From Calcarisporiella thermophila CBS 279.70 (lineage: Eukaryota; Fungi; Calcarisporiellomycota), in NCBI RefSeq assembly GCF_041956535.1, contig NW_027192223.1, positions 45,879-109,878 of the forward strand: DNA of 64,000 nucleotides. The letters run 5' to 3'. The stretch's first letter is position 1. Each line of letters starts with the position of its first letter. The notes beneath the pieces are model-generated. The model was not told the DNA's origin. It searched no databases and saw nothing but the letters and a program-made list of their open reading frames with translations. The translations under genes were made by a program, and so were the position numbers. Positions 12,472 through 64,000 of the stretch are shown piece by piece.

Positions 12472-14483
12472 CTAAGGATGTTTTTTAGATGATCTAGGCG
12501 TTTTTTTCGAAGGCGCTTTCGCTGGAGTACTCGTGGGAGCTTTTACCGGTGTCTCATTTACAGTATTGCCCTTAAGTTTTTTCTCCACCTTTTGAAGAGT
12601 TTTTCCTGCTTTTCTCTGCTTCACATCCTCCTCCTTCTCTTTAGCCAAGAGTTCTTGCTTTCTGTTCTGCAGCTTAGCAACCTCGGCCTCTTTCCGTTTT
12701 CGCCCGTACTCGATTTTGTTGTATAATTTCTGTTGCTTTCGTGTCATCATAATCTTAGCGAGCTCGTGAACTTCTTTCTCTTCGCTCTGCACCGTAGTTA
12801 TGCGCGATTTCTTTGCCTTTTTGTTTTCATTTTCTTGAACCTCAGTCTTGGATTTGCGCTTGCGAGCTCCAGCAGATTGTTCGACATAATCGCTATATGA
12901 AATGCCCGCTGCTTCAGCTTCGAGTTCCTTCTGATAGACGTCTTCCTCATCCTCCTCCTCCTCCTCCTCCTCCTCAAATTCTTCTTCATTTCCCTCATCA
13001 TCCTCATCATCCTCATTCTCAATTCCCATTTCTCCATCAATCTGCTTGTCATCACCCCTAACATCATCGTCGTTAGTCTTATTTTCCGGCTCAAAACCAT
13101 CTATTGCTTCTTTTGGAACATAATCTCCTTCTTTTACTTCAACGAATGGACTCAAATGGGGTGGAAGCGTCTGACCGGGGCCATAGGGCTGCGTGCGTAG
13201 TAGTTTCTTCGCATTAACGCAATCATATACCCATTGCGGTTGCACGTAATTGCGCGTAAGATGTTGCTTCCCAGCATCTGGTCGATCACACACTTGATGA
13301 GTTATGCGAGCGTCACTTTCCATGTAAGGTGAACCAGCTCCTAGTACTGGATCCCACCCTACGTTTCCACCGAATGCCCGCACAATGAACTCGAGAGAAT
13401 ATCGCGGCACTTCACGTGAAAGATAAATAACACAACCAGCAAAGAGACGCTGGTGCTCACGCTCCTCAATATGTGCCTGTTTAATATCCTCGAGTGTAAA
13501 TCCACGCATCTCTTCGGTCGGCTTTTCAAATATTTTATCCTCCACACTTCCTACCATAGCCTCTTCTCCATCGTCAGCTGGTTTCTCGCCTTCTTCGCTA
13601 AAGTCGTCCGATTTTTCCACTACCCATGCGTCTAATCCCGCAGCCCCGTTGGCGAGAGAAGTATCTTGGCGTGGAGGGTACACCAACTTTAAGTCTGAGA
13701 AAAGGCGGAAATTCACAAACCCAACTAGGGTACGATAAAACTCAAGGAAAGTGAGCATCACTCGAAAATCAACATCCGAAGGCACAGCTTGGCTGAACTG
13801 GTATGGAACGACCCATGTGATGGGCTGCCCGTGGATTTCTGCCTGGTAATAAATCCCTTTGATAGAAAGAAAAGTTTTGCGTAAAGCGCGTGCGCGAATA
13901 ACATAGTGCTGAAATTCAGCCGAGAGTCGCTGGCAATCTTCAATTAATTCAGATTTAACCTTGTCAGTTTGTGGCATAGTTGCAAAAAGAAAGATCATGC
14001 AAAGTGCGTCGTCAAGATCACGAAGTGCGTCAATGAATGATGGGTAACGCTCTTTCACAATGTGGTCGAGAGTATATGTAGGTTTATTTTCGCGAAGTGA
14101 ACGAGCAATACTGTATTCTTTGCGCACGGCTGCCTTGGCGAGCTTGCGAACGAACACTTTGTGTTCGCGGAATTTTTGGAGAAGAGGTTCATGGAGTAAG
14201 TATTGAATGTCTTTGGTGTAATAGAAAGTAGTAGGCTTCGTCGATCCCTTGTTTGCTTTCTTCTTATTTTTAGGCTCACGAGGGTAGATACCCTTGAGAA
14301 TACATAAGCGCCTAGAAGAATGGAGTGGAGGGAGAATTAGTGTCAATTCAACAAAGTTAACGAAAATTGCAATCAAATTTACCGAAAATCAGCCAAGCTC
14401 ACTTGAAGTTTCTTTACAGCAAGTGAACGGGTTATATAATTCGTAGCCGCTCCCGCCTCTCCTTTCTTCTTGATCTTTCCCAT
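12472..14483 (-). CDS. NOP7: Pescadillo / Nop7 (PeBoW complex, 60S biogenesis)
   Basis: [24 protein letters not shown]|[14 protein letters not shown]-terminus, BRCT region (FLSREVPR-like, [29 protein letters not shown]) and acidic tail. Confidence 0.97.
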
Positions 14484-16285
14484 GGTCGAATATCTCTGCT
14501 TACAATAATGAGAAAGGTAGAGGATTTCTAAAAAATTGAGACTAGTAAAATGTTTACATGTGGCTTGGTGCCAGTCTCAGAAAAGCTGTCACATCAATAA
14601 TTGCATTAAACTTCTTGATTTTGAATATAAAGTTGTATATGTAAACGATTTGAAATGGTCCAATTATCAATGACTTTCAACATAGTATACCTGAAAATAT
14701 AATCGAGGCAAACTTTATAGGTTGGAAGCTTACTAATATTTAGTAGAAATCATGGCGATGGTGAAGGTAACTTAAGCAACGATCATTCTGTTATAATAAT
14801 AAACGTTTTGGTTGCCAGTTATACGTCAATTATCCAAAGCTATTGAAATCTAATGGCTATTGGCAAATTGAAATAAACGAATCATCTCATATCTGTAACT
14901 AATTCTAATATATTTGAGCGAATATCCAGGCGCTTGCAATCACAGCAGCAAAACTACAAATATTTATATTCTTATATTATTAAATCCGTTATGATTGTTG
15001 AGTCAATAGAATAACTAATAAAGGGAAATAATTCCATTGTGAAGTAGTTTCACCCACAATTAAAATACCATAGAATTCTGTACAAAATACCAGAAAAACA
15101 CTTGTAACTTGATTTTGAATAGCCCCTCATACATGAAATAGATCTCATTAATCGGAAAATCTCTATAATCACTTTATTTATTTCATATTCACTAGTCCTA
15201 TCAATTTACTTGAGCAGACTTTGTGATTCTATGGTTTATATTCGGCCAATATATCTGTAGAATTGTCATTTGGTTCGACTGATTTTTTTGGTAAGAGCTA
15301 TTCAATATATGTGATCTTAACATACAAAATGAGACTTGAAGAGACCAGGATATGCCTTTAAAACATAAACACAATTCTATTTCATATCTTGACGAATAAA
15401 CAATTTAATATAAAAAAGCTGATCTAAACTTGATTGCATTCATGGAGAAGACATACTAAATGTCCTACATCCTTTCATGCTCACCTAAATACCCTGTCCA
15501 ACATAACAATGAACAGCTAACATATTTAGAATCCAATGCAATCTTTGATTCAGTGAGCACCATTACTTCACATCAAAGATTAATATTTACGAGCTTACTG
15601 ATGTGAAATCATTTAGTTTGCCTTTTTTTTTTATTTATTCTCCTTAGATTTTTACAGAGTCATGTATTTATACAAAATATTTTTATACAGTATTATATTG
15701 GGCCCCATTAGGATGGTCAGATCGGAGGCTATGGTCGAATTGTGAAAAGCCAATAGCAGTACTCTATACCTGTATTTAACCATTTTTACTATTCCTATAC
15801 TCTATCTCGCCAGGCTCTCTCCAAATTTGTAGGTAAAGATTGTAAAAACACACACCAGATGTAGGTTCAATTTTATCAGTTTTTATTAACACCACATCCA
15901 TTTCTTAGGACTACTTCTGTTATTTCAATTTAAAGAAAAATACCTAGACTTTGTACTCCTTATATTTTATTGTTTTTTGGGATTCAACCATGTGTGATTC
16001 TTTTTTACATAAATGAAACCCTTATTACCTTCTGAGTACAGATATTCATATATACATTAAATTTTGTACTAGCGTTTTATTAAATTGATATAGAGGAGAA
16101 AGTTAAAGAATAGTTTAAACAAATCTGTTGACAACCTTGTTGGGTGGCATGTAGAACAATTCTAAGACATTGAAATAAGGTGGCTTAGAAAATACGTCAA
16201 TCAAGTAGCCCACACACTCTTTCCTTTTCTGTTGGAAACGCGTAGAATACCCTTTTGACTTTTTTCTTGACAACATATATCAACA

Positions 16286-17276
16286 ATGGCTGACACTGCA
16301 AAGAACCCCGCTGTAGAAAATGTGCAGCAAGAGGTGAGTAATATGTTATACTGGATGGATGGATGTATCAAAGATGATAGAAGATGAACATGGAGTTCGT
16401 ATAACCATATGGAACATTGAGCAAAATGATCATCTTATTTTTGGATCTCAGTTATATCCATGCTTTTAACTCATAATCTCTATATAATTATCTCAGTATT
16501 TTATTGTTCTAATCTTTATGATCATTTGATCTTAATATAGGAGGAAGTTGAAGCTTCTCCCGATGTTCATTTTGAGCCCATCGTGAAGCTCGAAGAGGTT
16601 GAGGTCAAGACGATGGAAGAGAATGAGGATGTTCTCTTTAAAATGTACGTGTTTACAAAAAGGGTTTTGAGCACAAGCTGATTTATAATTGTGGTTATAC
16701 TGCGTTATGATATAGGCGCGCCAAGCTTTTCCGTTTCGAAAAGTCCAGTAATGAGTGGAAGGAACGTGGCACTGGAGATGTTAAATTTTTGCAGCATCGT
16801 GATGATAAGCTAGTTCGACTTGTGATGCGCCGTGACAAAACCCACAAAGTGTGCGCGAATCATTTAAGTATGCCAAAGATTTCAATTTCGGCATTACATT
16901 GAAGTAATGTGTTAATTTAATTTTTTTAGTTCATCCTGATATGAAACTCTCCCCTAATGTGGGTTCGGACAGGAGCTGGGTTTACGCTGTTGCTGCTGAT
17001 CTTTCTGATGGTGAGCCCAAACCAGAAACTCTTGCCATCCGCTTTGCAAACTCTGAAAGTACGTGCTGAAAGATGTATATTATGTCTTCATTGATTCTCA
17101 CTCGACTCGATTGTTGATTAGACGCTAACCAGTTCAAGGAAAAATTCGAAGAGGTTCAAAAGAATAACAATGAGCTTCTGACAAAGAAAGAGGGTAAGGC
17201 TACCTCCGAAGAGAAGAAAGAAAAGAAAGAGGAGGAGGAAGAGAAGGTGAAGGAGGAGGAAGAGGAGCAGCTTTAA
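16286..17276 (+). CDS. YRB1: Ran-binding protein 1 (RanBP1), 5 exons, absent from the ORF track
   Basis: Spliced translation: [96 protein letters not shown]. Confidence 0.95.
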
Positions 17277-17499: not shown

Positions 17500-17507
17500 T
17501 GTGACTG
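17500..17507 (+). promoter_or_regulatory. HomolD-type box TGTGACTG upstream of NOP58
   Basis: Exact reverse complement of CAGTCACA, about 110 nt before the ATG; recurs upstream of six other genes. Confidence 0.65.
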
Positions 17508-17612: not shown

Positions 17613-19530
17613 ATGCTTGTGCTTTTTGAGACACCGGCGGGCTACGCCCTTTTTAAGCTTCTTGATGATGGCAAGATTGAAAAACCAGAGGAGCTCTATA
17701 AAGCTTTTGAGTCGCCAGAGAGTGCTAACAAGCTGTAATTTTCAGGGTTTTGGTACATGCTTAATCTTTTTCTAAAATCCTTTTTTATTTCAATAGTGTC
17801 AAGTTGCAAGCCTTTGGCAAGTTTGAAAATACGACTGATGCCCTTTCTGCGGTAACTGGAATTGTGGAAGGAAAACTACCTAAAAATCTCAAAGAGTTCC
17901 TCTCTGCTGAGCTAAGTGAAAAAGATATCAAAAAAGAGAGCCTTATCGTTGCTGACCCAAAGCTTGGTAATCTTTATATTTTTGGCAAAAGATTCTTTTA
18001 TATCCCTGACTATTTTAACACTTAAATTAGGTTCTGCAATTAACAAAAAGGTTGGCATCAAGGTTGTTTCGGATTCCACTGTACTGGATCTCTATCGTGG
18101 TATTCGTGGCCAACTCGAATCACTTCTTACCGGCCTTTCCTCTCAAGATCTTAACTCAATGATCCTCGGCTTGTCACATTCCCTTTCACGCTACAAGCTC
18201 AAATTCTCTCCCGACAAGGTTGATACTATGATTGTGCAAGCCATTGCTCTTCTCGATGATCTTGATAAAGAATTGAATACCTACGCCATGCGTGCTAAAG
18301 AGTGGTACGGCTGGCACTTCCCTGAAATGGGCAAGATTATCGTCGATAATCTTGTTTACGCTAAAGTTGTGCGTGCAATGGGCTTCCGATCGAATGCGCA
18401 AGAAACAGATTTTTCTGCGATTCTACCTGAGGAACTGGAAAAGGAACTGAAAGATGCTGCAGAGGTGTCAATGGGCACAGAAATCTCAGATGAGGATCTT
18501 ATCAATATCAATGCTTTGTGTGACCAAGTTATCACAATGTCAGAATATCGTGCACAACTCTATGAGTACCTAAAGAATCGTATGCAAGCCATCGCACCGA
18601 ATCTTACAATGTAAAATACTAAAACGGAATCTTTATTTTTGGGTTAACATCAAAATTAATATTTATTTCTTTTCGTCTAGGCTTGTAGGAGAACTCGTTG
18701 GCGCTCGCCTCATTGCGCACGCTGGCAGTCTAATGAATCTTGCAAAACATCCAGCTAGTACTGTCCAAATCCTTGGAGCCGAGAAAGCATTGTTCCGTGC
18801 GCTTAAAACTAAACATGATACACCCAAATATGGTCTTATCTATCATGCAAGTCTCGTGGGTCAGGCGGGTCCAAAACTAAAGGGCAAGGTAACTAAACTT
18901 AGGAGAAATCATACTATTGTTTATAGTTATTTTGCTAACAATTTAACTTTTGTTCATGCTTCAATAGATCGCCAGAATGGTTGCTACTAAGGCTGCTATT
19001 TCCATTCGTGTTGATGCACTTGGTGACAAAGATACTCCTGAAGTTGGTATGGAAAATCGGGCAAAAGTGGAAGCACGCCTACGACAACTTGAGGGTCGCG
19101 CTGGTGTAAAAGTTAATGTTGACAAGAGTGCTAAACAGCAGAAGAAATTTGAATTTACACCGTAAGTACAATTGTTTCTATATATTAAAATCGCAAAATT
19201 GTGATTCACACAGCTTTTTTGTGTTTATTCTGCATCAGATCAAAGACCTATAATGCATCGGCGGATGCTGCAGTTGGAGAGAAGAAAGATAAGAAACGGA
19301 AAGTAGATGACGAGGCTATGGATGAGGATGAAAATAAAGAAGAAAGTGGTGCAGAGGAGGAAGAGGAAGAAGAAGAAGAGGAAAAGAAGAAAGAGAAGAA
19401 AAAGAAAGAGAAGAAGGAGAAGAAAGAGAAAAAGAAAGACAAGAAGGAGAAGGAGGATAAAAAGAGGAAAGCTGAAGATGAGAGTGAATCAAAGGAAAAG
19501 AAGAAGAAGAAGAAGAAGGAATCAAAGTAG
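17613..19530 (+). CDS. NOP58: Box C/D snoRNP core protein Nop58, multi-exon
   Basis: [15 protein letters not shown] start, [70 protein letters not shown] and KKE-rich tail. Confidence 0.97.
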
Positions 19531-19824
19531 GAATGCTGATAGATATGTATTAAGTAAAATGATTCAATTTTTGCAATAAATGAAACAATACAAGTATAAT
19601 ATATAGCTAATTTTTGGCAAATTTGATAGTCTTTTCTCTGTCGTTAAGTATATTAGTATGGTGTGGGTAAGAAAAGAACTTGCAATGAATTTGAAGACAT
19701 TGGATTTTTATTTTCATGTTCACTTTGTTCATGAAATTACTTTGAAAAAAAAAGTTGAAGGGCTTTTTATTTGACTACGTATTTATTAAATAGTCAAATC
19801 ATAATGAACTCTCTTAGAAAGATT

Positions 19825-19832
19825 TGTGACTG
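19825..19832 (+). promoter_or_regulatory. HomolD-type box TGTGACTG upstream of NOG2
   Basis: Exact 8-mer about 130 nt before the ATG. Confidence 0.65.
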
Positions 19833-19956: not shown

Positions 19957-21841
19957 ATGGGTAAAGCAAAAGGGAAGCAACCGGATGATGGCGAACCTCG
20001 CACTCGCGTTAAAGGAGAAAATTTCTATCGGGATGCAAAAAAGATTAAATACATTAATATGTTAAAAGGGGGGAAAGCAATTCGTGATTCTAAAGGACGA
20101 ATCATTAAAGCAGCTGAATTTCAGAATCGTGAGGCCCCTATTGCTAGAGTACAGCCGAATCGAAAGTGGTTTGGTAAGACAATATGCATTGATAATGTAA
20201 ATTTTTAATTACTGACCTTAAATGCATTTTAAGGAAATACTCGTGTCATTGGACAGAAAGCTCTTGAAAATTTCCGTGAGAGCATGTCCAAAAAAATGAA
20301 TGATCCTTATCAAGTACTTCTACATCAGAACAAGCTGCCTATGAGCTTACTTCAAGATCCTCAGAATACTTCCAAAATGCATATTCTCGAAACAGAATCA
20401 TTCTCTCATACTTTTGGATTAAAATCACAACGTAAGAAGCCAAAACTTGCAGTTGGAAGTCTTGAGGAACTGATGGAGAAAGTAGACCAAACACAAGGTA
20501 ATTCGATCGTATGATATTAAGTTTTGAAATTATTGCTTATTCACTCTACCTGCAGAAAATTATGTCGAATCCAAGGATTCATCTCTACTCTCGAACAAAG
20601 TTACTGATTATGTGGAAGAAGCTCGTGACAGTGTATATCAGAAGGGTCAATCCAGGCGTATCTGGAATGAGCTTTACAAAGTAGTCGATTCCTCTGATGT
20701 ACTTATTCATGTTCTTGACGCTCGTGACCCAATGGGAACACGTTGCAACGCAATTGAAAATCATTTGAAAAAAGACGCGCGTCACAAGCATCTTATTTTC
20801 GTGCTGAATAAGTGTGATCTCGTACCAACTTGGATAACTGTAAGTATTTTTCTTTTTTTCTGTTTCTCCTTCCCACAATTAAGTCAGGGTACTCATTTTT
20901 ACCTCTGTGATGGGATACCCGTTACAATTGTGGGAGAGCAATATCACCTCAACCCAGAGCTTCGCCTTGTTATAAGGCATCTCTAACCTGAGAGTGGTCG
21001 TTCTGAAAGAGTTGAAGAGTGTTGGCTAAATATAATCTACCATGCTTTTCATAGTATTAGAACAAACATTTCTTTAACTGTTTTTTTAATCATGACTAAA
21101 TGCTTTTGATTTTTCCACTAGGCACGATGGGTCAAAGAGCTTTCGAAAGAATATCCTACGCTTGCCTTTCATGCTAGCATCAATAACTCCTTTGGCAAGG
21201 GATCTCTAATCAATCTATTGCGACAATTTGCTTCCTTGCACTCTGACAAGCGACAAATCAGTGTTGGCCTGATAGGATATCCAAATACTGGAAAATCTTC
21301 CATTATCAATACATTGAAGAGTGATCGTGTATGCAGTGTCGCACCCATTCCTGGTCAGACAAAAGTCTGGCAGTATGTGACTTTGACACGGCGAATCTAT
21401 CTTATTGATTGCCCTGGTGTTGTGCCACCAAGCACCGAAGATTCAGAGACACAAATTGTACTCAAGGGCGTTGTGCGTGTAGAAAATATAAAGCAACCGG
21501 AAGAGCATATTCCTGCAATACTGGAACGTGTGCGCACAGAGTATATTATTCGTACATACGGAGTACAACAATGGGATGATTCGATTGATTTCTTAGCAAA
21601 AGTGGCGAAGAAGTCAGGGAAATTGCTAAAAGGTGGAGAACCGGACCTTAACACGGTGAGCAAAATGATTTTGAATGATTGGCTCCGTGGTAAGATCCCA
21701 TATTATACCAAACCTCCGTCTGTAAACGAAAATGATGATGGAGAAGATGAGGAAAATACCGAATTAGTAGATGAGGAGGAAGTTATGGATGAAGATGAAG
21801 AGGAATTACAGCAAGGTGAAAGTAGTAAGAGTGGTGCCTAG
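19957..21841 (+). CDS. NOG2: Nucleolar circularly permuted GTPase Nog2/GNL2, 4 exons
   Basis: NGP1NT N-terminus ([20 protein letters not shown]), [43 protein letters not shown] and DCPG. Confidence 0.97.
20870..21071 (+). ncRNA. SNR191: Intronic H/ACA snoRNA, snR191/U19 (SNORA74) family
   Basis: Lies in the 282-nt third intron of NOG2 (20840-21121). It has a perfect 10-bp stem TCCCACAATT/AATTGTGGGA, H box AGAGCA (20935-20940) and ACA followed by TTT (21066-21071). Pocket strands AGTCA/GTTAC and GAGAGT/TAGT are complementary to LSU rRNA helix 69 (GUAACUAUGACUCUC). Confidence 0.9.
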
Positions 21842-22148: not shown

Positions 22149-25100
22149 CTAATCGAATTTTCTTAATAATGAGGCCTTGTCAATTACTTCAACTTCTTTC
22201 ACAATTCCTTCTCCAATTCGTTCCATTTGTTTAAGAATTGTTTGCAAATCAGCTGCAATCAGTTCGTCCTGTATACAATTTAGAGTAAATTCCATATATC
22301 ATAGTACAGAAATGTGTATAAAATAACACTTACCTTCGAGCCGAGCTCAAAATCTACCAAACCATCTCCCAAATTTACCCTCCACTTACGAGGTTGCTTC
22401 AGAGACGGTCGCCAAAGCCCTCCAATAATATCCCCGCCATGACAATCATGGAAAAAGATAGCTACATCGCCAAACAACTTTTCTAGTTCTGCTAAATAAT
22501 ACTCGGTGGGATCAAATCCCACAAGTACCTCATCCCCATAGGTTCCCTCCGCCCGCGATTTTTGCCGTTTGAGCTGTTGAATCCCAAACCGCTTCTTCTT
22601 CTCAGTGAAGGCTTTTGGGTTCGGTGAAGCGTTCTCATAGTGACGGGTACATTTTGACGGATTCAAACGGATGATGAAACTATAGTCAGTTAGAGGTGTG
22701 GAGAACAAGCGCTATAGTAAAATTAAATACCAAACATATAAGTATTATAGTGTTTAAAAAATAAATAGGTTATATAATAAAATAATTATACCTTGATATC
22801 TTTGACTTTGCAATGCACCAATTCTTCCATTAGTTTGCATGCTGCCCGAGACAGTGAGGTGATCCTAGCCGCTACCATTTTGGATGGGCTATCCCAGGAC
22901 CACCACCGTGATTCACGATCAAATTTGGTCGCTACAAACATGGCAGCATGATGCATTTGCTCATCCTGTGCGCGTATCCGTTGGAAATTTTCAATTGCTT
23001 CCTCTCTTTCTGCGCCTGTGAGTCCTTCTCCTTCATTGTACAAATCTATTACCAATGGCTCCACACGCCAATCCCATGTTGCCATCATCTCAAGCCAGCG
23101 TGAAAAACCGGCAAAACCACTAGCAGGAGGTGAAAATGGTGCAGGATCAACATATACTCGTACGCATAAAAGCTCCACAAGTTCTTCAGGCACATGTCGG
23201 GAGAGAAGGTGACTGCCAAGCCAGCGTTTAGCAAGTCGTATCGTATGTGAAAGCGAGGGATAGCGATGACATTGACTTTGAATATGAAAAGTATGAAGAG
23301 GTGCTCGAACTAGATACTTTTCGTAGCGCGAGAGGGCGTCGATGTAGCGTTGTCGTCGTGACTTCGTTGATTTTATGTCTGTTATGCCTCGGTTCAGGAG
23401 TGTGATTTCACGATCATGGCGGATGCGGCAACGAAAAACGAAGCCAGGAGGGTAGAGAATATCCAAATAGCTGTTAATACCAATTTCTTGACGAACTAAC
23501 TGTTGCCCATTGCTCGCTAGTGAACCATCATTCTTGAAGTCTGGGACTACAACCTGAGAGGGTAAACCAAACTGCGTCTTAAGTCTCTCTGCAATTTTCA
23601 AGTAAAATGCACTCTTGATTTTCTGGATCGCAACAAGATCATCAGGCCATCTTCCACTCTCTTCAAATTCAAGCACCACCTCTATCGGATAGAGGTAGCG
23701 AGCAGCATCTGGATAATCTGTAATATTCGAAACGTCAAGGGGTTGTGGGAGGAGCATTGATGCATATCGGAGGGCAGGTGATGCCGGCAAGACAGAGGAG
23801 AGTTCAATAGGAAGTTCAGTTAGCTCTTTCATCTGTTTTACGAATTGTTCGTAAATAGATGTGACGAATCCAAATCCTACTGCAGTAATATCACTATTAA
23901 ATAGTTGCGCTGGTACAATGGGTGAGAGATGAATCATCGTATTAAGCTGCCCTGCCCAGTACTGAATCTGGTCTGGCATAATATTGAAGTGACGATGTAG
24001 TAAGTAAATTGTCATTTGCCCTACAATGAGTGACCTTTGTTCTGATCCCTTTGCATCCCATACAACGCTCTCCAAGATACTACCGTCTTTAAATCGCCTC
24101 AGCTCAGCCTTTTCTCCCCATAGTTGACGAAATTGAATTGACGCTTGCTCATCTTCTGGGGTAGGACCCTGATCAACCAGACGATTTGCCTGCTGGGGAT
24201 TCAAAACCATGCCTATGTATACTGTAGTGTTCTCAGCTGTATAAACCGGAGGAGATATTGAAATAGACCAAGGTGGAAGTGGGTCATGCTGTATCGATAT
24301 AATTTGAACTCGGTTGGTCAAGCCGTGTTTCAAGATAGCAGGTATTGCCCTCGTAAAATGCTGTAGTCTATTCGGGTAGTCAAGCTCTGCTGCTTCAGTG
24401 TAGGTTGTGTATCGCTCAATTGGTAATCGAACCCTTGCTAGGTTATCATATCTCAAACTAAGCTTGTCCGCTCTTTTTAAGAAAATATCATCAAAATGGT
24501 CCTCTTTTGCGTCATTCAAATACTCCATAGTGAGTTTCGCTTCGTGTTGTAATTCTGCAAAAGTAGAGCGTGAAAAACATCCGGTCAGATTGACACGACC
24601 CGTCGGATCCACAAATACAATATCGAATTGTGAAGTGAATGCTTCAGCTGAAAATTCATCATACTTGCTGTGAGTGGACATGAATAAAGGTTTGCTTGCA
24701 AAATCATGTGTAGCTAGGAAATCCATAGTTCCCTTAAATAATTGGAAACTACTTAATCCATTGCTTAGTTTGCGCGAATATTTTCCATCTCCTTGAAGCA
24801 AATAGGCCATCAACATTGACCATAGGAATCCGTTAAAACCAGCACCGCTTTTGCGTTCTGAGGAAGAGAGACCGCGCTGGTGCAGCCAAACTTTAGCCAA
24901 AAGGCACGCATCTGCAAATGAAGGACACGCTTTTGCATGGCGATAAAGGAAAGTAAGATGGCTAATATACGATGCATCCTGTAGAAGTGCAGTGTTATAC
25001 TGAGGGGTTGGTGGAGGAGAAGCTGAATTATCTTGAGCCGAGCCAGATGGACGGACATTATTGCGCTTGGGTGCAAGCCGCTGTTCTGGGAAATAATTTG

Positions 25101-26365
25101 CAGCGATAGCAGGCAACACACGAATTATGCATTTCAATTTTGAAAAATCGGTATCAGATTTGTCTAGATATAATAACAGTCAGGTTACTGCATATTTAAA
25201 TATTGCAAATAAATATGTACCTTTTGCACTTTTTAGAATCAAAACCGGTCTCCTATTGTCGCCATTTAACGCTGAGAACTCGAGGTTTACTTTAAGTTCT
25301 TTGGAGCCTTGAATCTCTTTTGCAAGGACAGCAAGGTAATACGCTCTTTTATAAAAGTAGCGATAATTTAAATGATCTTTCTCTTGGAATAGTGCCTAAA
25401 ATAATTAATAAAAAGAGTCAGGTGTAGTTTGCGATTGACACTATTAAATAATAATTCTTACAGCTGGCATTTCAACAACAACATCAACATTGAAATTCCC
25501 ACGAGTGCGCACAATTGTTTTTAGGGGAAAACTTCCAGCAACGTGAACAGATGTAGGCCGCTTAAATGCAAACTTATATTGTGTTGCACTAGGAGGCTTT
25601 GGGTCTGGAAAGGGGATGGTAACGTTATATTTTGCTAGGTTTTTTGTAATATCAGAGAGCTATAGCAACGAAATCGTTGAAAAATATTTGTGTCAACGTA
25701 TTAGTTTTGTTTAGGTTGCAAAAATAAACATACTGAAGCCTCTGGAATATCTGGAATGTTATCCAGAATTGTTTTAAGTTTGTGTAAAGCAGTTTCTAAG
25801 GGTTGTAGCTTATTATAGTCGATGCGAACTTCGGAAAGCAATTCGTCGATCTTCGGAAAGAAAAATCAATTAGTTGGAATATAAAAATATAAAGTAGAAA
25901 TAATTTATACCTGGAGTTTAAATATATTAGACTTGAAAAGCTCAGAAGCCTCCTTCAAACCTTGAATTTCATCGTTTGTTGGTGCAGCGTAAAGGTGGTA
26001 GTTGTTTTCTTCTTTCTTAGGCCTTTCAACACCATGTACCGCATCGTAACTGGCCAATTCTTCATCACTATCATGTTTTCCAGACATCGATGCCTCCATT
26101 AAGTCGTCACCATCGTCGCTTATATCTTCTTCATCCGAATCGTCGATATAATCATCAGATCCGAAGTCACTATTTTCGTCGCTTTCCTCTTCGATGTGAG
26201 CCCGTTTAATTTTCAATACTGAGGATTCATGCTTTTAAATATAAAACGATTTTCAATAAATCTTATTCTAAAAGTAAAGGAATATTCTCTTTCCAGAAAA
26301 AAGCTCAAATTTACCTTCATATCCTCTTCATTTTCGCGGATTATTTTCCGTTTTAATGGTGCCAT
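22149..26365 (-). CDS. UTP22: Utp22 / Nrap (NOL6), SSU processome, multi-exon
   Basis: ELFKSNIFKLQ, PPTPQYN, FRQLWGEKAELRRFKDGSILESVVW, FEESGRWPDDLVAIQKIK, TIRLAKRWL, VGFDP. Confidence 0.95.
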
Positions 26366-26433: not shown

Positions 26434-26441
26434 CAGTCACA
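26434..26441 (-). promoter_or_regulatory. HomolD-type box in the divergent UTP22 / MIC12-like promoter
   Basis: CAGTCACA exact; a second partial copy AAGTCACA at 26399-26406. Confidence 0.65.
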
Positions 26442-35130: not shown

Positions 35131-35138
35131 TGTGACTG
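35131..35138 (+). promoter_or_regulatory. HomolD-type box TGTGACTG upstream of the PIN/Swt1-like gene
   Basis: Exact 8-mer about 90 nt before the ATG. Confidence 0.6.
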
Positions 35139-37066: not shown

Positions 37067-38305
<1,239 letters not shown>

Positions 38306-41600: not shown

Positions 41601-44307
41601 TACCATCAACTTTTGCTTTTGAACGCATATTAAGTGGGATATGGTTGACAGTGAGATTGAGTAGAATCGTGGTTAACACTTGTTTGCCTGTCCACAAGGG
41701 GCGTGGTTTGAGAATAGCCGATTCGACCGTGAGAATAGTGCGGCTACCAATGTAATCCGGATCTTCAGGGCGAAGAGCACCATAGATAAGCTGCTGGTAT
41801 TCTTCACGAGTGAAAAAGGTATCTTTTGATGTCATCCACACACCGGCGTCAACATGGTCTTGAATTAAGCCACGAAGAGGAGATCCAGAAGTCGGCACAA
41901 GATACTGCGAATCAGTATTTGCAATTAATTTCGCTTCAGCGCGCGCGATTTCATTCTGAGGAAAATGTAAATTCATCTCGTCACCGTCAAAATCAGCATT
42001 GTAAGTATTACTAAATATCGGTGAGGAAATTTGTTATCCTAATATTTAGAGTAATTAAAGTATAATATACCTACCAATTTGCATAATGCATTCGAATGGT
42101 TTTTTCTCCTGGAAGAATACGAGCACGATGTGCCATGATAGAAGGTTTATGTAAAGTGGGTTGACGATTCACTAATAGCATATCGCCATTGCGAATATGG
42201 CGATAAACCTTTTTGTTAATCGCAGAAGTTGCCGTTGGATAAAGAGCACTGCTTGAACTCCCTGATACGCTTTGTGGTGTAAGGAGCTGGTGGGCAAGAG
42301 CAATCCGTGATTCGAGACTAAGATGAGTTAAAGTTGTAAGTGACCCATCCTCATGCTGGACATGAGTTGCTCCCGGCCAGACATCAGGTCCATTTATGAT
42401 AGCTTTGCGAAGCTCCTTGACATTAAATGAAGTCACTGGCTCAGGATACGTGAGTTTTTTGGCAAACACAGGTGGTATCTATATTGAAAAAAAAAATGAA
42501 GTGAGCATGATTGTTATCAATATAATGCTTATATCAGCGCATACTCCAATCTCATTTGTCTCAATGTTGGGATCAGGCGATATCACAGAACGAGCAGCAT
42601 AATTGACACGTTTTCCCATCATATGTTTACGGAAGAGACCTTCCTTCTTTTCAAGCACTTGGCGAATACCTGTGGGAGGATTGCGTCCACGAGGGGTTGT
42701 TGTATTCTTGCTTGAATCAATGTAACCATTTACTTCTTGCTGTAGTCGAATAAATGCATCGATAAGGGATTTGTAGACAACACCCTCGTCCACTTGCTTC
42801 TCTTCTCCGTTAGATTCGCTTCGTTTGGAAAGAAGACTATTAGTGTTGCGGATTTCCTCGCATAGCGAGAGAATTTTACTAAGAAGTTCATTTTGTGGAT
42901 TTTCGAACATTTTGTCGTTCATTACTGACGGCGGGCGGAATCGTGTCGGAGATACAGGAAGTATTTCAAGAAAGAATGCATCAGCTGAGGCGAGTTTTGG
43001 TTTAGATTTACCCACCGGAGAACGAGCACCAAACATCAGAGTAGTCATTTGGTTTTCATTCTCAAAGAGAAGCTTCAAATGGCCCTTAACGTGCATAGAC
43101 GTAAGATATTTAGACGACTCGGTGACATCTTCATCGATATCTATTGAATTTTCCTTATGAGCCACCTCGACTGTCTCCTCATTATCATCGGCGGATCCCT
43201 CAATTTCCTCGTCGATATCCATTATATCCTCGTTATTCCGCCTTGATGATAGTTTACTATTGGTCAAGAGCACATTCCGCTCTTTCATGCCCAATGCCTC
43301 CACATAAAGCCTCTGCTTTTTATTCAATGGAAGCTGGAAAATCTTAACAAATCCATCTTTACGCAGAGCATATGCGGGACTATAATAGATTTGAGCAACA
43401 TTTAAGTTGAGAATATAGAGAAAAAAATAGTTATATACTTACGCTTTACAATTTTCGCATTTCTTTTTTGCGAGAGCTCGTTTCATAAACTCACTTATGA
43501 CTTTTTTGCGTTCATCTGTCACTACAGTTACCTTGTAAGACATGTCCGAGGATGCGTTATTTTTTATGGCATGCTTTACAAATGCATCTGTAAAAAGAAA
43601 TTAGTTAGTGATGAAATATTTATTTATTGGCTATCGACTGGTACTAACCTAACTTTCTAATATAGTTCTCTCCATCCATTCCTTCTTCCTCAGCCTCATC
43701 TTCGGCGTCCAGCTCCATTTCTTCTCCTCTTTGCTTCATTTTCTCCGCTGATATTGGAATTCCATCTATCCTATTAGCCTCAACCACCAGACCGCGATCA
43801 AGTAATATTAATTTCGATATATAACGATGTAACTAAAAAATTAAGGAGATGAATAATTTTTACAAAATATTCTGACATAATTAGAATTTATACCTCTGGC
43901 CTGGACATACGGAAATGATGACAATTCCAACAAGTGGATCGTAGTAATGAAAACATTTGATTAAAAAACAACGGGTTGTATACGGGGGTTGGAAGTTCAA
44001 TGTGACCAAAATGTCCTGGACATGAAAAGTGATCGAGTGTACATGTTGCACAACTAATAGAAGACAATTGCATGAAATTTATGATAATTTTTTGTAATCC
44101 TTTAAATTGTGTAAACACTCACACATGGCTCTTGCTGAATGGTCCTAGTGCAGGGTCGTAAAGCCCGCCCTTAGTGGGGTGCATTAAATTGTCAAAGATT
44201 ACAGGGTTGATGATCTGCTTGACAGATATCTTCTTGATCTCCTCGGAGTCATATAATGAGAAGGAGACCGAGGAGATCTCTGATCCCACCGGGCGGGCGA
44301 TATTCAT
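38655..44307 (-). CDS. RPA190: RNA polymerase I largest subunit, multi-exon
   Basis: [94 protein letters not shown] and the Pol I acidic expander. Confidence 0.98.
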
Positions 44308-50105: not shown

Positions 50106-50113
50106 CAGTCACA
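50106..50113 (-). promoter_or_regulatory. HomolD-type box upstream of the U2B'' gene
   Basis: CAGTCACA exact, about 60 nt before the ATG. Confidence 0.6.
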
Positions 50114-55675: not shown

Positions 55676-58653
55676 TTATATTTCTGACGCTATATTAGGG
55701 AGATTGTATTTCTTATGTTGGTAAACCATTAAATCTTTAGATGAAATGGAAGGTGTAATAATTCGGAGAGCTTCTAAAAAATGTTCCATGCCCTAAGAGG
55801 AAAAAAAATGAAATATGATAATTCAGCAGCTGACAAAATCATACATACCACTTCACTTGAGACGCACATGTCCCGTAAAACTGTCATTGCGGCCTCACGG
55901 CAGAGATTTCTTAAATCTGCACCGCTAAAATTCTGTGTCTAAAGGCAATATAGTGGAATTATAAAACATTTCCCTATAAAAATCCTGCGATATTGATTCT
56001 CTACTTTATCCGCAATAACTTTTAGATCAACGTCTGCCTTGAGAGGGACGTTGCGAGTATGTATACGAAGAATCTGGAGTCTTGCGATAGTATCAGGCAG
56101 TGGAACCTAATAAAAATGATATTTAGAATTTTAAATGTTGAGTTTGGACAATAAAATATGAATTTAACCCTCACATAAATCAGTCGATCAAATCTTCCAG
56201 GGCGGAGGAGTGCGTCGTCAATCATATCCAATCGGTTCGTCGCGCCCTAATAGTCATATCATATAGTCAATAAGTACATAGTGAAATATATTCTCTAGTA
56301 GGTTTGTCAACACCAACCATCACCAGCAGAGAGGAGGCTATCTCTACCCCGTCCATTTCATTTAATAATGTACTCAGTACTCGTTCACGCACGCTATCTC
56401 TTCCTACACTGCCCTCTGAATTAAAATCGCGCTTTCCAACGATCGAATCCACCTCATCAAAAAAGATAATTGCTGGTGCACTTGCTCGGGCTTTCTGAAA
56501 CGTTTCCCTGATCGTCTTCTCCGAATCCCCTACATATGGCGAATAAAGCTGCGCACCATTGATAGAGAAGAAACTTGCTCCTGCAGTGTTGGCCACCACC
56601 TGCATCAAAAACATCATCTTACTAATAACCCCCAAATTATTTTTAACCAATATCTCTTACTTTAACAAGAGTTGTCTTGCTACATCCGGGCGGACCATAT
56701 AATAATACACCTCGCGGTGGTCTGAGCCCTAGGCGATCGAAAGTAGAGTGAAATTTCAGTGGCCACTCTACGGCCTGTTGAATTTGCTTCTTGACTTGAT
56801 CAAGGCCCCCAATATCATCCCACGACATACTCTCAACCGGAACCTGTAAACCGCGCTGAATCGAGGGGGGAATTTTTGCTAAAGCTCGCGAGAAATGTTC
56901 ACGAGTGACAAAGCTTTTGATAAGCAGAGATGTAAATTAGTCGTTGCCACTAAAGTTTTATAAATATAGGCTTCAAGAGAATAAATTATTATTACCAATT
57001 ATTAATTTTGGATTTATCTTCAATATGGTCCTGCACTGCTATCATCGCGGCCTCTCTAACGACGGCAGCTAAATCTGCGCCTACATATCCATTTGTAACA
57101 TTCGCTAACCATTGAATATTTATATCACCCTCATTATTTGTCTTATTAAGTGGTATTTCTTTCAACATATCCTTCAACATTCTTCTCCGTGTTCCCTCTC
57201 CAGGAACTTCTATTGCAACCTCACGGTCAAACCTACCCGGTCGACGAAGTGCTGGGTCTATAGAATTCGGACGATTTGTTGCTCCAATCACCACCAGCTG
57301 CCCTCGCGATTCCATCCCATCCATAAGGGTAAGAAGCTGAGCAACAACACGCGATTCATGCGCTTGTGCGTTAGCGCGCTGAGGGGTTAGAGCATCAAGC
57401 TCATCCATAAATAAAATACAAGGTGCATGACTTCTGAGAGCAAGATCCTTTGCCTGCTGAAATTTTAATCGAAGATTCGCTTCACTCTCCCCTGCATGTG
57501 GGGCATACACAGAAGGACCGTGGAGTGTAACAAGACTAGCACCACATACTTTAGCAATCTTAGTAACGAGATATGTTTTGCCCACACCAGGAGGACCATG
57601 CAACAGAACTCCTATATAAAAACTAAGTTATAAATTTGCAAATAAATCAAGAGAATAAAATGAGTAATGAGTATTAACCTTTAGGACATTCAACATTAAG
57701 TTTTTGGAGATAATGCGAAAAAACTAATGGATATCCAACAACTTCCAATAAAGCTTCGTATGCCCGTTCCAGCCCGGGGATGGTTGAAGTCTCGAGTGTC
57801 AGCGCGCGTAAAGAACTAACTAAATTTTTTTGGGCATGATCGGTCTCTTCTATTACTGCTATGCGAGTGGTTTTGGTAACAAGAAATAATTCAGCTGGAC
57901 TAGAGGGGGGAATAGTATTGTGAACCTGAGTTGAAGGTTGTTCACAAAACAGAATGAGGTTTATGAATGAAGATAAAAGAACAAAGTTAGGCAAGTATTC
58001 AATACCTTTATCTTTAACGATTCACATGCTTCAGAGCCAATAGTGCATCCCGATGATATTGCGAGACCATCAAGTATATTTCGCAATATCTGCATAATTG
58101 ATATGATAAATACAGTGCATAATATATTGAAGCAATAAACTGCGATTTTCGTATTTCTCTTTCGTACCTGTTCTTGTAAATGGCCAGGGGAATCTAAAAA
58201 TTTCTTTAAAATATCAGAAGACCGTTCTTTATCGATGGAAATTGTGACATTAATGCAGGGTTTTGGAGACGGTATTAGAGAGATAGTACCTAAGGAAGAG
58301 TGCAATCAATCTCTTAAGTTACCGTTATATTCGAATTATCAAATATTTACATGCATCAGTATCCAATATTTCATCGTCGTAAGTTGTTAATTTAATAAAT
58401 AAATCTGCCTGTACAATTTCTTCTGACAAACTTGAAGGCCAGGCACAACATACCCAGTGCTATTCCAAAAATATTTATGCTCAATTAATATATTATTATT
58501 GATTGTAATTCCTTAAGTCACCTGATTTCGTGTAGCAATTCTAACCCATTCACCTACTCCAACCCCCGCTCTTTCCATTCCCCTGCGAAATATTCTGCAA
58601 CGAGCTGTACCTTTTTCATCATTCCCCAGGGGCAAAATTCTATATTTTGACAT
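55676..58653 (-). CDS. AFG2B: Type II AAA+ ATPase AFG2B / SPATA5L1-like, multi-exon
   Basis: D1 has [42 protein letters not shown]2 has [22 protein letters not shown] and [13 protein letters not shown], closer to SPATA5L1 than to Afg2/Cdc48. Confidence 0.8.
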
Positions 58654-59640: not shown

Positions 59641-59648
59641 TGTGACTG
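59641..59648 (+). promoter_or_regulatory. HomolD-type box TGTGACTG upstream of NOG1
   Basis: Exact 8-mer about 125 nt before the ATG. Confidence 0.65.
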
Positions 59649-59765: not shown

Positions 59766-61902
59766 ATGTCATTATATAATTTCAAACGAATCCAGCCGGT
59801 TCCAACGGCAAATGACTTCATTGATATTGTTCTATCAAAAACACAACGCAAGACACCCACAGTAGTGCACAAAAACTATGCCATTTCCCGTATTAGACAG
59901 TTTTATATGCGGAAAGTCAAGTTTTCGCAGGATGCGTTCGAGGAAAAACTAAAGGATATGCTGGAAGAGTTTCCAAAACTCGATGTATGTCGATTGTGAA
60001 CACCTTATTTTCTTAATATTGGGTAAAAAAATACTGACGCTTGAATTATTCGTTTAGGATATTCATCCATTCTACGCTGACTTGATGAATGTGCTGTACG
60101 ATCGTGATCATTACAAACTTGCTCTCGGCCAAATTAATACTGCCCGCCATTTAATCGACCAGGTCGCAAAAGATTATATCCGAATGCTGAAATTTGGAGA
60201 TTCACTCTACCGCTGTAAGCAACTTAAACGTGCTGCGCTCGGTCGCATGGCCACGATAATGAAAAGACAGAAAGATAGTCTTGCTTACCTTGAACAAGTT
60301 CGTCAACATCTGGCCCGTTTACCTACCATTGATCCCAATACACGCACCCTACTGGTATGTGGTTACCCCAATGTTGGTAAGTCGAGCTTTATGAACCGGG
60401 TGACTCGGGCAAACGTCGAAGTACAGCCGTACGCTTTTACAACAAAGAGCTTGTTTGTGGGCCATCTTGATTACAAGTATTTGCGTTGGCAAGTGATTGA
60501 TACGCCAGGTATTCTCGACCACCCGCTTGAGGAAAGGAATACGATTGAAATGCAATCAATTACTGCCATGGCCCATTTGCGCTCGTGTATTATGTTCTTT
60601 ATGGATTTATCAGAGCAGTGCGGTTACAGTGTTTCCGATCAGGTAGTGTATACCTCTTTCTTTCCAATACTTCTCTCACACAATTACATTCCAAATGCAT
60701 TAATTAACTTGTAAATATTATTTTTTATAGTGCAAATTATTCCACAGCATCAAACCTCTCTTTTCGAATAAACCTACCATTCTCGTCATTAACAAAATTG
60801 ATGTGATGCGACCGGAGGATTTACCTGAGAGTGACCAAGCGCTGTTGAAGGAGATAATTGAGCAAGACGGAGTGCAGATGGTGCAAATGAGTTGCCATAA
60901 TGAAGAGGGTGTGATGGAAGTTAAAAATACGGTTAGTTGTGGGAATATCTATTTTTCAGTTAGCGCTCTTGTTAAATTTTGGTCTCCTTTTGTTAGGCTT
61001 GTGACAAGCTTTTGGCTTCTCGTGTAGAAGTGAAGATGAAGAGCCATAAGATCAATGACGTCCTTAACAAGCTCCATCTAGCTGAGCCAGTTGCTCGCGA
61101 TGATGTTTCCCGACCACCCACTATTCCAGCGGAAGCTGTTGGTCGTGCTAAATATGATTGGAACAACCCTGAACGACGTAAATTAGAGAAGGATCTTGAA
61201 GTTGAATCTGGAGGAGCTGGTGTATACAATGTCGACCTCAAGAAATTATACCTACTCAAGGATGATTCGTGGAAACACGATGCAATTCCAGAGATTTGGG
61301 AAGGCCACAATGTTGCTGACTTTATTGATCCAGATATCGAAGAAAAACTAGATGCCTTGGAGCGAGAAGAGGAGCGACTTATGGCCGAAGGCTTTTATGA
61401 ATCGGATGAAGCTGAAGAGCTGGACCCCGAGGAGGAAGAGACTCGCGCAATGGCAGAGAAAATTCGTGAACGCAAGAGGCTGATTGTGCAGGCGCATCGC
61501 TCGGCAAAGGGCAGAAATGGACCCATCATTCCAAAGAAAGTTCTTGCAAAGAAAGCAACCAAGCAACAAATGGATTCAAAACTCGGGGATCTTGGTCTTG
61601 ACACATCCGAGGTGCGTGCACGCAGCGTGACAAGGAAGCGTGCACGAAGCGAATCTCGCGCGGAAAGCAGTGTTCGATCGGAAAGTGTTGCGCGTGGTAC
61701 ATCGAGCATGGGACGCGATAGAAGCACAATGGGATTGCGCAATGTACGGCAGAAACTTGAGGCTGACAAAAAGCAGAAAATTGTCCAGAGAGGAAAGGCT
61801 CTCTTCGCCAAAAAAGGCGAGGCAGATCGCGAGATCCAAGTCAAAAAGCCGAAACACTTGTTCAGTTCAAAGATGTCCATGGGCAAGCGCGACTGGCGCT
61901 AA
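59766..61902 (+). CDS. NOG1: Nucleolar GTP-binding protein Nog1 / GTPBP4, 4 exons
   Basis: [67 protein letters not shown]. Confidence 0.98.
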
Positions 61903-62097
61903 ATGGTTGGCGCTATGGGCCAAGCTTTATTTTCTTCACCCTCTACACTACTGTTCTCTTATTTTTCTTTTCTCATTTTTCGATTTCGCCGTTTTTCTTC
62001 GTATTTCTTACACCCAGTATATCTAATAAAAGTATAACATATTTAATTCGAATGTCATATTTAAAGGTCACGAAAGTACATTTCACAGTCATATCTA

Positions 62098-62105
62098 CAG
62101 TCACA
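62098..62105 (+). promoter_or_regulatory. HomolD-type box CAGTCACA upstream of ESF1
   Basis: Exact 8-mer about 55 nt before the ATG; near-copies CAGTCATA (62086) and AGGTCACG (62065). Confidence 0.65.
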
Positions 62106-62155
62106 TTGTAAATATCTCAAGAGAAGGATAAACTCACTATTTCTGGTTTACTCGA

Positions 62156-64000
62156 ATGGTTAGAGCAATGCCAGACAAAAATTCGAATAAGAATAGATCA
62201 AATACGAAAAAAGACGGATCGAATGCTCGGAGAGGCAAGTCCAATGAGCGCAATAAAGGTCCGATCACAGTCGATCCTCGTTTTGCTCATGTTCATAATG
62301 ATCCTCGCTTCAAGCGACCAAAAAAGAAAGACCAGAAAGTGGTCATCGACAAACGATTTTCAGTGTTGTTAAAAGATAAAGAATACACTGGTGCACGTAA
62401 GTCTATATATGTATCTTATATTTAAATTTTGCTTTTGTATTTATGATTATAATTTTCTAAATAGCAAAGGTCGACAAGTACGGGAGGCCAATTGCAAGCG
62501 ATAAGGCAAAAGAAGACCTGAAAAGATATTACAAACTCGACGAAGAGGATGAGTCAGATTCAGTTGAGGACAGTTCTGATGAGGAAAAATCTTTGGAGGA
62601 TCTGGAAACTCTCCTACAGAAAGAGGAGGAAGAGGAGGAAGAGGAAGAAGAGGAAAAGAGAATATATGATCCAGCGAGAGGCGAAGGAGTCTTGTCCTCT
62701 TCAGATGAATCGGATATAGAAGAATATGATGACAAAGAAGAGAGTGAAGAAGCTCAAGAATCCGTGAGTTATATAGACTTTTTTTCTTTCAGAACCATCT
62801 TGATATATTTATGTCAATTTAATAGTCAATACCACTTGGCGAAGAAACTCGTAGAATAGCTGTTGTCAATATGGATTGGGACCATGTCCGTGCTACTGAT
62901 TTAATGAAAGTGTTCAGTGGATTCAAGCCAAGCGGGGGTGTAATTCGATCCATTAAAATTTACCCTTCAGAGTTCGGCAAAGAGCGGCTGGAAAAGGTAC
63001 ACATTGAAAACTGTTTGCAGTTGACTGCAATGAAGGACTATATTCTATTTTAATATTATTAGGAGGCTAGAGAAGGTCCACCCAAGGAAATTTTTAAGGA
63101 CGTAAACAGTAGTGACGTGGAGGATGAAGAAGAAATAAATGAGAAGACAATAATTAAAGAGGATTCAGGAGAGGAATTCAATATGGAGCAACTCAGAAAG
63201 TATCAATTGGAACGTTTAAGGTAATTCAACGCAAATTACAGGATATTATAATTCAGTATCAATTAACAAGTGCCAACATTCTCGTAGATATTATTATGCG
63301 GTTATTGACTGTGACACAGTGCAAACTGCTCGTGCCCTCTACGAAGCTTGCGATGGACGTGAGTTTGAGAGTAGTAGCAATTATTTTGATATGCGATTTA
63401 TTCCTGATGAGATGGAGTTTACTGATGAGCCAAAGTATGCTAAATCACCTCTAATAATTTATACTCACAATATTAAATGATTTTCTTATGAATGCACAGA
63501 GATGTTTGCACTCAAGCACCTGACAATTACAAACGTATCGATTTCGTAACCGATGCATTACAGCACTCTAAAGTAAAGCTTACATGGGACGATGATGATC
63601 CTGACCGTATGAATATCACACGTCGCAAATTCACAAAGGAGGATCTAAAGGATATGGATTTCAAGAGCTATCTTGCTTCTTCTGACGAAGACGACGAAGA
63701 CGATGAAGAGAAAGGAGCTGCAATGCGCGAGAAATATCGTAGTCTATTGAATGGTTCGGAGTTGCCAGACGATGACGTTGACAAAGAAATGGAAATTACA
63801 TTTGCGCCGGGGCTAAGTGAGGCAGCCGCAGAGCTCTTGGAGAAAAAGAAACAAAAAGAGGCAAGTGTTCAAAATTGATAACAGACAAGTTAAATCAAGA
63901 ACTTACACTTATTATCTAGGCTCAAGAGAATGAAACCTCCTTAGAGACATATCTCCGAAAGCAACGTGAAAAGAAACAGGCCAAAAAGCAAGCGAAACAA
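62156..64000 (+). CDS. ESF1: Pre-rRNA processing protein Esf1, multi-exon, truncated by the window end
   Basis: DPRFAHVHNDPRF, VDKYGR, DPARGEG, RIAVVNMDWDHVRATDL, IYPSEFGKERL, LRKYQLERL|RYYYAV, DFKSYLASS, MEITFAPGL. Confidence 0.96.

Follow-up and report, generated by a model that had tools for sequence, protein, structure and literature searches.

Does a segment of DNA that carries many genes for ribosome biogenesis (RiBi) constitute a co-regulated neighbourhood, or do these genes merely lie near one another? The question is raised by a 64,000-nt window of the heat-loving fungus Calcarisporiella thermophila, taken from the 242-kb contig C33, in which a sequence-only reading had assigned nine of 23 protein genes between 11.5 and 64 kb to RiBi families and had proposed a common control that might extend past the right edge. 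To define the gene content, each exon of the spliced genes was searched separately for domain and family matches. The nine RiBi genes were recovered, within a total of 24 protein genes rather than 23 (38%); seven are firm and two are probable (Table 1). NOP58 matched PDB Nop58 with 224 bits and Nop56 with 139. For the first probable gene, Atlas gave 0.93 to the U3_snoRNA_assoc cluster and 0.92 to the NOL7 cluster, Pfam PF08297 remained under the cut-off (E 0.02) and a six-frame genome scan gave no match; it is probably BUD21/UTP16/NOL7-like. The second is probably AFG2B/SPATA5L1, AFG2B being the only eukaryotic chain that aligned to the N-terminus of this double-AAA ATPase (E about 1). The identities proposed for ArgRS, NatA, CCT8 and uL10m were confirmed, as was YRB1; the other 15 of the 24 genes are unrelated, general housekeeping genes (ATP17, MZT1, DPM1-like, TIM50-like, PPR) and do not mostly serve translation.

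Table 1. Genes, snoRNA and Homol-D boxes of the RiBi segment (positions in the window)
Feature	Position	Strand	Remarks
NOP7/pescadillo	12472..14483	-	Pescadillo_N E 8e-113; 60S, PeBoW complex
NOP7 Homol-D			two 1-mismatch sites, -96 and -110
YRB1/RanBP1	16286..17276	+	interspersed, outside RiBi count; no Homol-D
Homol-D box TGTGACTG	17500..17507	+	-113 to NOP58 ATG
NOP58	17613..19579	+	box C/D snoRNP core; Nop domain
Homol-D box	19825..19832	+	-132 to NOG2 ATG
NOG2 GTPase	19957..21841 (3' end approximate)	+	NGP1NT and MMR_HSR1 domains
snR191-like H/ACA snoRNA	20871..21071	+	NOG2 intron; E 8.6e-8, 45.5 bits vs gathering score 46
UTP22/Nrap	22149..26365	-	SSU processome; Nrap domains
Homol-D box	26434..26441	-	-76 to UTP22 ATG; 200-bp promoter common to MIC12-like gene
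BUD21-like Homol-D			1-mismatch, -86
BUD21/UTP16/NOL7-like (probable)	33961..34988	+
Homol-D box	35131..35138	+	5' of SWT1-like PIN nuclease gene (RNA metabolism; outside RiBi count)
RPA190, largest Pol I subunit	38655..44307	-	264 bits vs RPC1 85, RPB1 79
Homol-D box	50106..50113	-	5' of RRM gene at 49.5-50.05 kb (non-RiBi), which we take to be U1A/U2B''-like
AFG2-family double-AAA ATPase	55680..58653 (3' end approximate)	-	Cdc48/AFG2 group
Homol-D box	59641..59648	+	-125 to NOG1 ATG
NOG1 GTPase	59766..61902	+	NOG1_N and NOG1 domains
Homol-D box	62098..62105	-	inverted orientation; -58 to ESF1 ATG
ESF1	62156..64000, continuing beyond edge to about 64.65 kb	+	RRM_ESF1 E 9e-21
URB2	about 70-75 kb		outside window, after ESF1
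RPA34	about 78.5-79.8 kb		outside window, after URB2

The order NOP7-YRB1-NOP58-NOG2-UTP22 is consecutive, as had been claimed, since the gap at 14.5-16.2 kb contains no ORF of at least 70 codons. NOP58-NOG2-UTP22 and NOG1-ESF1 are directly adjoining, non-homologous RiBi genes. The block does continue beyond the right edge, where URB2 and RPA34 bring the count to 11 RiBi genes in 68 kb, laid out as one triplet, one pair and six singles. After a RiBi-free stretch of ∼47-48 kb, a second island follows on the same contig (POL5, UTP21, YTM1, RPL4 and NUG1, that is, four RiBi genes plus RPL4). C33 also carries NOG1, NOG2 and NUG1, two subunits of Pol I and, of the three PeBoW subunits, all but ERB1, which is encoded on C19. 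An AAA gene at C33:191-193 kb, whose first ATPase motif is degenerate, was excluded from the firm RiBi count. Six stretches of C33, 16,868 N in all and each lying outside 46-217 kb, did not enter the analysis. The pathway genes do not form a contiguous block, given the unrelated genes (15/24) and the 47-kb gap before the second island, and no CpG or ApT signature was found at the C33 islands. The snoRNA noted in the block is snR191-like, and emerged in Rfam in E-value mode only; at the gathering threshold Rfam returned two tRNAs only, and it revealed no further snoRNAs at 30.5-64 kb. A NOG2-intron snR191 is widely conserved in fungi (PMC8476143), and the H/ACA snoRNA-in-intron layout found here shows no difference from that system. 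Because this is a conserved host-gene arrangement, it lends no independent support to clustering.

PAC, RRPE, Homol-E, telobox and site II motifs were searched and not located at RiBi promoters. The sole shared element found in the island, which occurs genome-wide, was Homol-D (CAGTCACA/TGTGACTG): less than ∼200 nt from the start, five of the nine RiBi promoters of the window contain an exact copy and seven contain one with at most one mismatch, placed 58-132 nt upstream of the ATG. RPA190 and AFG2B present no Homol-D inside 250 nt; the site nearest to AFG2B (58918-58925, about 265 nt upstream) is nearer to an orphan gene at 58941. When one mismatch was allowed, Homol-D was present in 11 of 13 RiBi promoters versus 6 of 15 others (Fisher p 0.02), whereas with the exact motif the two groups did not differ (p 0.13-0.25); the shuffled rate of the 7-mer core was 1.3%. 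Genome-wide, 561 sites were counted versus 109 for the reversed control. Sites on C1-C4 showed no overdispersion (p 0.83), and therefore there is no general clustering of the regulon at the 64-kb scale. Besides the enrichment and the continuation past the edge, the earlier proposal is supported in that the shared element is consistent with one regulon. Control at the level of the neighbourhood is unsupported: any co-regulation of the RiBi genes looks promoter-autonomous, because most of them have a box of their own and such sites are spread over the genome, and two of them have no nearby box. In our reading, the island is not an operon-like unit with a single control element.

To evaluate the enrichment, we assumed 200-280 RiBi genes as background, drew on a genome sample of 36 genes and estimated a ∼2x concentration in core-gene regions. 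The density of RiBi genes in the segment is 11-16 times the genome average. The enrichment persisted at the 2x core background, where nine genes in 52 kb gave a scan-corrected P of 5e-5 to 8e-4 and 15 genes in 151 kb a P of 2e-6 to 1e-4, the latter figure omitting the AAA gene at 191-193 kb (16 with that gene). In the rest of the genome, close pairs among 36 RiBi genes (21 contigs) are 6x as frequent as under a uniform distribution, compared with 1.6-1.9x for cross-function pairs and 11x for within-complex controls (proteasome, LSm); RiBi pairs do not significantly exceed cross-function pairs (Fisher p 0.09). On balance, we lean towards a non-random RiBi-regulon neighbourhood that represents the extreme tail of a genome-wide, function-based gene pairing, set on an old housekeeping segment.

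The main competitor, to which we give a lesser though appreciable chance, is that a gene-dense core compartment and ordinary RiBi pairs and triplets were juxtaposed by chance, proximity mattering only within pairs. When adjacent genes were counted once, the window came down to six units in 52 kb, with a scan-corrected P of 0.07-0.4 at 2x core, which fits chance, but the 68-kb island, taken as eight units, still gave a P of 0.003-0.035, and the contig carries a second island besides. Chance is likewise favoured by the unrelated housekeeping genes (15 of 24), by the links surviving in other fungi, which equally involve non-RiBi genes (POM152, TIM50-like, CCT8), and by the Homol-D count, as seven sites per 64 kb are expected ∼0.16 times genome-wide and C3 reaches six. 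Against it stand the gathering on C33 of the three GTPases and of the Pol I and PeBoW subunits, and a measured core concentration of just ∼2x.

There was no RiBi-rich block around NOP7 (five species), UTP22 (four) or CCT8 (three), that is, at 12 loci in eight species, and in 12 fungal species NOP7 and UTP22 lie on separate contigs, each longer than 100 kb. In Endogone, the closest sampled relative, no RiBi gene adjoins UTP22. The block is not conserved in relatives; only fragments are, and these link non-RiBi genes too. NOP58 and UTP22 adjoin head-to-head in Radiomyces, NOP7 and UTP22 share one scaffold in Phycomyces, ∼29 genes (accessions) apart, NOP7 and CCT8 are 35 apart in Fennellomyces, and UTP22 and POM152, the latter also on C33, adjoin in Endogone and Basidiobolus. 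The last three of these links speak for an old segment. NOP7 and CCT8 are 710 kb apart on one contig in Radiomyces and 505 accessions apart in Savitreella, and CCT8 neighbours showed no conservation in three species. The tendency to pair persists across species with changing partners, NOP7 lying near RIX7/NVL in Powellomyces, RRN6 in Umbelopsis and, head-to-head, uS8 in Radiomyces, and UTP22 pairing with NOP58. Among the UTP22 neighbours of four relatives, 3-4 of 32 map to the C33 segment versus ∼0.3 expected (P 0.0004-0.005). Three candidate links were rejected. The Powellomyces AAA gene near NOP7 is RIX7/NVL (554 bits) and not an AFG2B orthologue (371), which removes it as a case of conserved synteny; an S4-domain gene close to UTP22 in Basidiobolus proved not to be IMP3 and is presumably a mitochondrial S4; and neighbouring accession numbers on short Linnemannia contigs are a sorting artefact.

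These comparisons bear on a stronger possibility, namely that the ∼15 RiBi genes of C33 form a domain under joint control, or jointly positioned, in association with chromatin or the nucleolus, and that this domain is what best survives of an ancestral supercluster of Mucoromycota or early-diverging fungi, broken up elsewhere, yeast-type pairs being its leftovers. The high density, the Mucorales fragments, the UTP22 neighbours that map back and the two genes lacking a box, which could depend on their neighbours, argue for it; we nevertheless consider it improbable in view of the missing blocks, the separate contigs, the isolated UTP22 of Endogone and the presence of an own element at each Homol-D promoter. 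RiBi over-calling or mis-assembly is hardly credible: BUD21-like and AFG2B are probable calls, but 11 other genes (seven window and four flank genes) have firm family matches, the firm window genes by themselves (7/24) give a P of 5e-6 at a 3% background, and the genes are single-copy, mutually unrelated and separated by intact intergenic regions.

In the favoured reading, that of an extreme tail of function-based pairing, Homol-D would act in the core promoter and be recognized by an Rrn7-type factor, by analogy with S. pombe (PMC4138321), and each gene would be switched via its own promoter alongside several hundred other Homol-D genes. An ancestral segment may have been shuffled by local rearrangements, while the genes may have been kept or gathered by weak selection that favours RiBi genes next to one another, or by a common chromatin domain that is open and responds to growth, with partners that would turn over between lineages, as described for RiBi pairs in yeasts (PMC3500266). 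Selection for proximity is inferred.

In yeast, adjacent pairing of RRB/RiBi genes (Arnone et al. 2012, PMC3500266; reviewed in PMC7653285) involves 44 of 282 genes, and up to 24% in Candida (PMC3500266; PMC7653285). The C33 island resembles it in that unrelated RiBi genes adjoin in tandem, convergent or divergent orientation with lineage-specific partners, and differs in that yeast has pairs, where 68 kb of C33 carry one triplet and one pair next to six single genes, and in that Homol-D replaces PAC and RRPE; unlike yeast MPP10-MRX12, with one common promoter, each gene has an element of its own. Homol-D has been described in fission yeasts (Ascomycota) for ribosomal-protein and snoRNA genes (PMC4138321). 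The octamer, its location ∼60-130 nt 5' of the ATG and its use in either orientation are the same here, but in this mucoromycotan it accompanies RiBi protein genes as well as certain other genes of RNA processing. Fungal metabolic clusters (GAL, secondary metabolite) also join functionally linked, non-homologous genes over tens of kb; the C33 segment, in contrast, is non-contiguous (62% of genes unrelated), appears to lack a cluster-specific regulator, has only ∼5% of its pathway and is not conserved as a block.

RiBi clustering in fungi was previously known as scattered pairs. C33, where 68 kb hold 11 factors and a 150-kb stretch ∼15, exceeds by far any such cluster that we found in the literature consulted, although the absent block conservation limits the value of the locus. 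Homol-D marks RiBi protein genes outside Ascomycota, and since the C33 island mixes unrelated bystanders with RiBi genes that have or lack Homol-D, it offers one locus for asking whether proximity adds to co-regulation through a common promoter box.

The 28.2-Mb assembly of Calcarisporiella thermophila, a thermophilic mucoromycotan (PMC11393059), comprises 116 contigs, and the 242-kb contig that carries the window at 45879-109878, C33, was examined beyond it as well. The NOP7 and UTP22 of the window match C. thermophila VTP21DRAFT_7803 and VTP21DRAFT_7807, respectively, without a difference. Testing each exon separately, and not as joined gene models, we counted 24 protein genes between 11.5 and 64 kb of the window. 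The sequence-only reading had listed 23, and the nine ribosome biogenesis (RiBi) genes it had claimed were all recovered, seven firmly and two as probable factors. One of these two, a BUD21-like gene, reached 0.93 to U3_snoRNA_assoc and 0.92 to NOL7 in Atlas, with a Pfam score under the cut-off. The other, a double-AAA gene of the Cdc48/AFG2 group, is probably AFG2B, its N-terminus matching, weakly, AFG2B alone among eukaryotic chains; the human counterpart has a role in RLP24 release (PMC10068337). The snR191 gene lies inside a NOG2 intron, a widely conserved arrangement (PMC8476143) that carries zero independent weight for clustering.

The suggested continuation past the right edge was borne out by URB2 and RPA34, which bring the total to 11 RiBi genes in 68 kb. 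In the more GC-rich ~47 kb after RPA34, a search for RiBi genes by recognition revealed none. A second island then holds POL5, UTP21, YTM1, head-to-head with RPL4, and a gene that we take to be NUG1 from its GTPase domain and by recognition. Withheld stretches of C33 fall elsewhere than in the two islands. NOG1, NOG2 and NUG1 all lie on C33, and ERB1 lies on C19 instead. A GlnRS gene is divergent from POL5. On its left side, uL10m marks a sharp accessory/core boundary.

Features of the C33 locus, of other contigs and of relatives (L-numbers, retrieved stretches); '-like' names of bystander genes are presumed from a Pfam domain or by recognition
Feature	Location	Description
Genes 1-8	window 11.5-64 kb	uL10m, NOP7, YRB1, NOP58, NOG2, UTP22, MIC12-like, PPR
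Genes 9-16	window 11.5-64 kb	ATP17, MZT1, unknown, BUD21-like, SWT1-like, DPM1-like, RPA190, ArgRS
Genes 17-24	window 11.5-64 kb	TIM50-like, U1A/U2B''-like, NAT1, CCT8, AFG2B, orphan secreted gene, NOG1, ESF1
Left of uL10m	window 1-11500, C33:1-45878	ABC transporter, tRNAs, LINE fragments, secreted enzymes, transposons
LINE fragment	window 6354-6923	zf-RVT
Orphan gene	window 58918-59443	secreted-peptide-like, between AFG2B and NOG1; exact Homol-D 23 nt upstream
URB2	C33 116-121 kb	
RPA34	C33 124.5-125.7 kb	
POM152	C33 158-162 kb	
Second island	C33:173600-209100	
Double-AAA ATPase	C33:191250-193500	divergent protein, first Walker A motif degenerate, without obvious N-domain; head-to-head with UTP21
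Proteasome subunit genes	C19:301000-303000, C26:87800-89600	two divergent pairs among 15 loci
LSm genes	C1:96-100 kb	pair
CBF/Mak21-family, Utp12-family, probable RPA135	C12:409000-431800	three likely RiBi genes in 23 kb, which may be a further RiBi neighbourhood
Brix-domain genes	C15:36000-39000	two side by side; six Brix loci in the genome, usually five
ERB1/BOP1	C19:542400-545200	head-to-head with DEAD-box helicase gene
Homol-D 10-mers	C3:989000-1053000	six in 64 kb, almost the window's density
RIX7 near NOP7	L024:14889-17257	Powellomyces
RRN6 near NOP7	L020:18407-21901	Umbelopsis
uS8 head-to-head with NOP7	L022:8886-9537	Radiomyces

Background was sampled by position-only family scans, which located 36 further RiBi genes, spread over 21 contigs, together with 42 control core genes; the families had been picked for their absence from the window, so that the sample describes the background rather than the share of C33. 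For cross-function pairs no more than 15 kb apart, the frequency was 1.6-1.9 times the uniform rate, from which we estimated a core-compartment effect of about twofold, compared with 6 times for RiBi-RiBi pairs and 11 times for within-complex control pairs. Assuming 200-280 RiBi genes and the twofold core concentration estimated from this sample, the scan-corrected P was 5e-5 to 8e-4 for 9 RiBi genes in 52 kb and 2e-6 to 1e-4 for 15 in 151 kb; the enrichment claimed for the window thus survives the estimated correction for a core-gene background. When adjacent RiBi genes were counted once, P rose to 0.07-0.4 for the window alone and was 0.003-0.035 for the 68-kb island, indicating that the enrichment is real but partly ordinary pairing. 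Function-based gene pairing is general in this genome, as in the proteasome and LSm pairs. Neutral accumulation of ordinary pairs within a core compartment, which the merged count for the window alone would fit and that for the island fits less well, is a rather unlikely explanation.

The conserved linkage in relatives that was to accompany the cluster did not appear as such: no conserved block was found in eight fungi, in which twelve stretches of 20 kb around NOP7, UTP22 or CCT8 were compared, and two weaker signals remained. NOP7 and UTP22, 8 kb apart in C. thermophila, appear to lie on separate contigs, each >100 kb, in 12 species. Their partners in relatives are often other ribosome genes, and in Radiomyces UTP22 is head-to-head with NOP58. 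UTP22 is adjoined by POM152 in Endogone and Basidiobolus, and in the latter a TIM50-like gene lies 9 kb from it; 3-4 of 32 UTP22 neighbours are shared with the C33 segment, against ~0.3 expected. With accession order taken as gene order, four Phycomyces assemblies have NOP7 and UTP22 on one scaffold at a distance of 28-30 accessions, and in Fennellomyces the distance from NOP7 to CCT8 is 35. Pieces of the C33 segment are old; since the retained links include non-RiBi genes, they date the segment and do not demonstrate selection on RiBi linkage. A reading of the locus as what is left, under domain regulation, of an ancestral supercluster, with these old pieces in its favour and the missing block against it, seems improbable. 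In contrast to an operon-like cluster, the RiBi genes of C33 are neither contiguous nor, in the neighbourhoods compared, conserved as a block.

Homol-D has promoter function in S. pombe, where Rrn7 binds it at ribosomal-protein and snoRNA genes (PMC4138321). Exact copies of TGTGACTG stand 58-132 nt upstream of NOP58, NOG2, UTP22, NOG1 and ESF1, and one-mismatch copies at NOP7 and the BUD21-like gene; within 250 nt of RPA190 and AFG2B the box is absent. Exact or near copies accompany RPA34, UTP21, YTM1 and NUG1, and POL5 has the 7-mer core directly upstream. The box is also present at the SWT1-like, U1A-like and orphan genes, and that of the orphan may serve AFG2B instead. Allowing one mismatch, 11 of 13 RiBi promoters carried Homol-D versus 6 of 15 others (p 0.02), several of these six being divergent promoters in common with RiBi genes. 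By the exact motif, the two groups could not be told apart (p 0.25). The 10-mer occurs at 561 sites across the genome versus 109 for the reversed control, and the window has seven versus 1.3 expected; on contigs C1-C4 the sites showed no overdispersion.

In its testable features the C33 locus works like the adjacent RiBi pairing of yeast, where 44 of 282 genes are paired and partners are not conserved (PMC3500266), but it is larger in scale and has Homol-D in place of PAC/RRPE. A literature search, with most subscription papers outside it, found neither this locus nor a RiBi neighbourhood of such size. That the locus is an artefact is hardly credible. The account towards which we lean, if only somewhat, is that the locus would be the extreme tail of function-based pairing, on an old housekeeping segment that would have been shuffled locally, with Homol-D control autonomous for each promoter and perhaps weak selection for a common permissive domain. 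With a factor presumably binding the boxes and co-expression expected, the clustered RiBi genes would be co-regulated one by one via a genome-wide Homol-D regulon, so that clustering would not be needed for their co-regulation.
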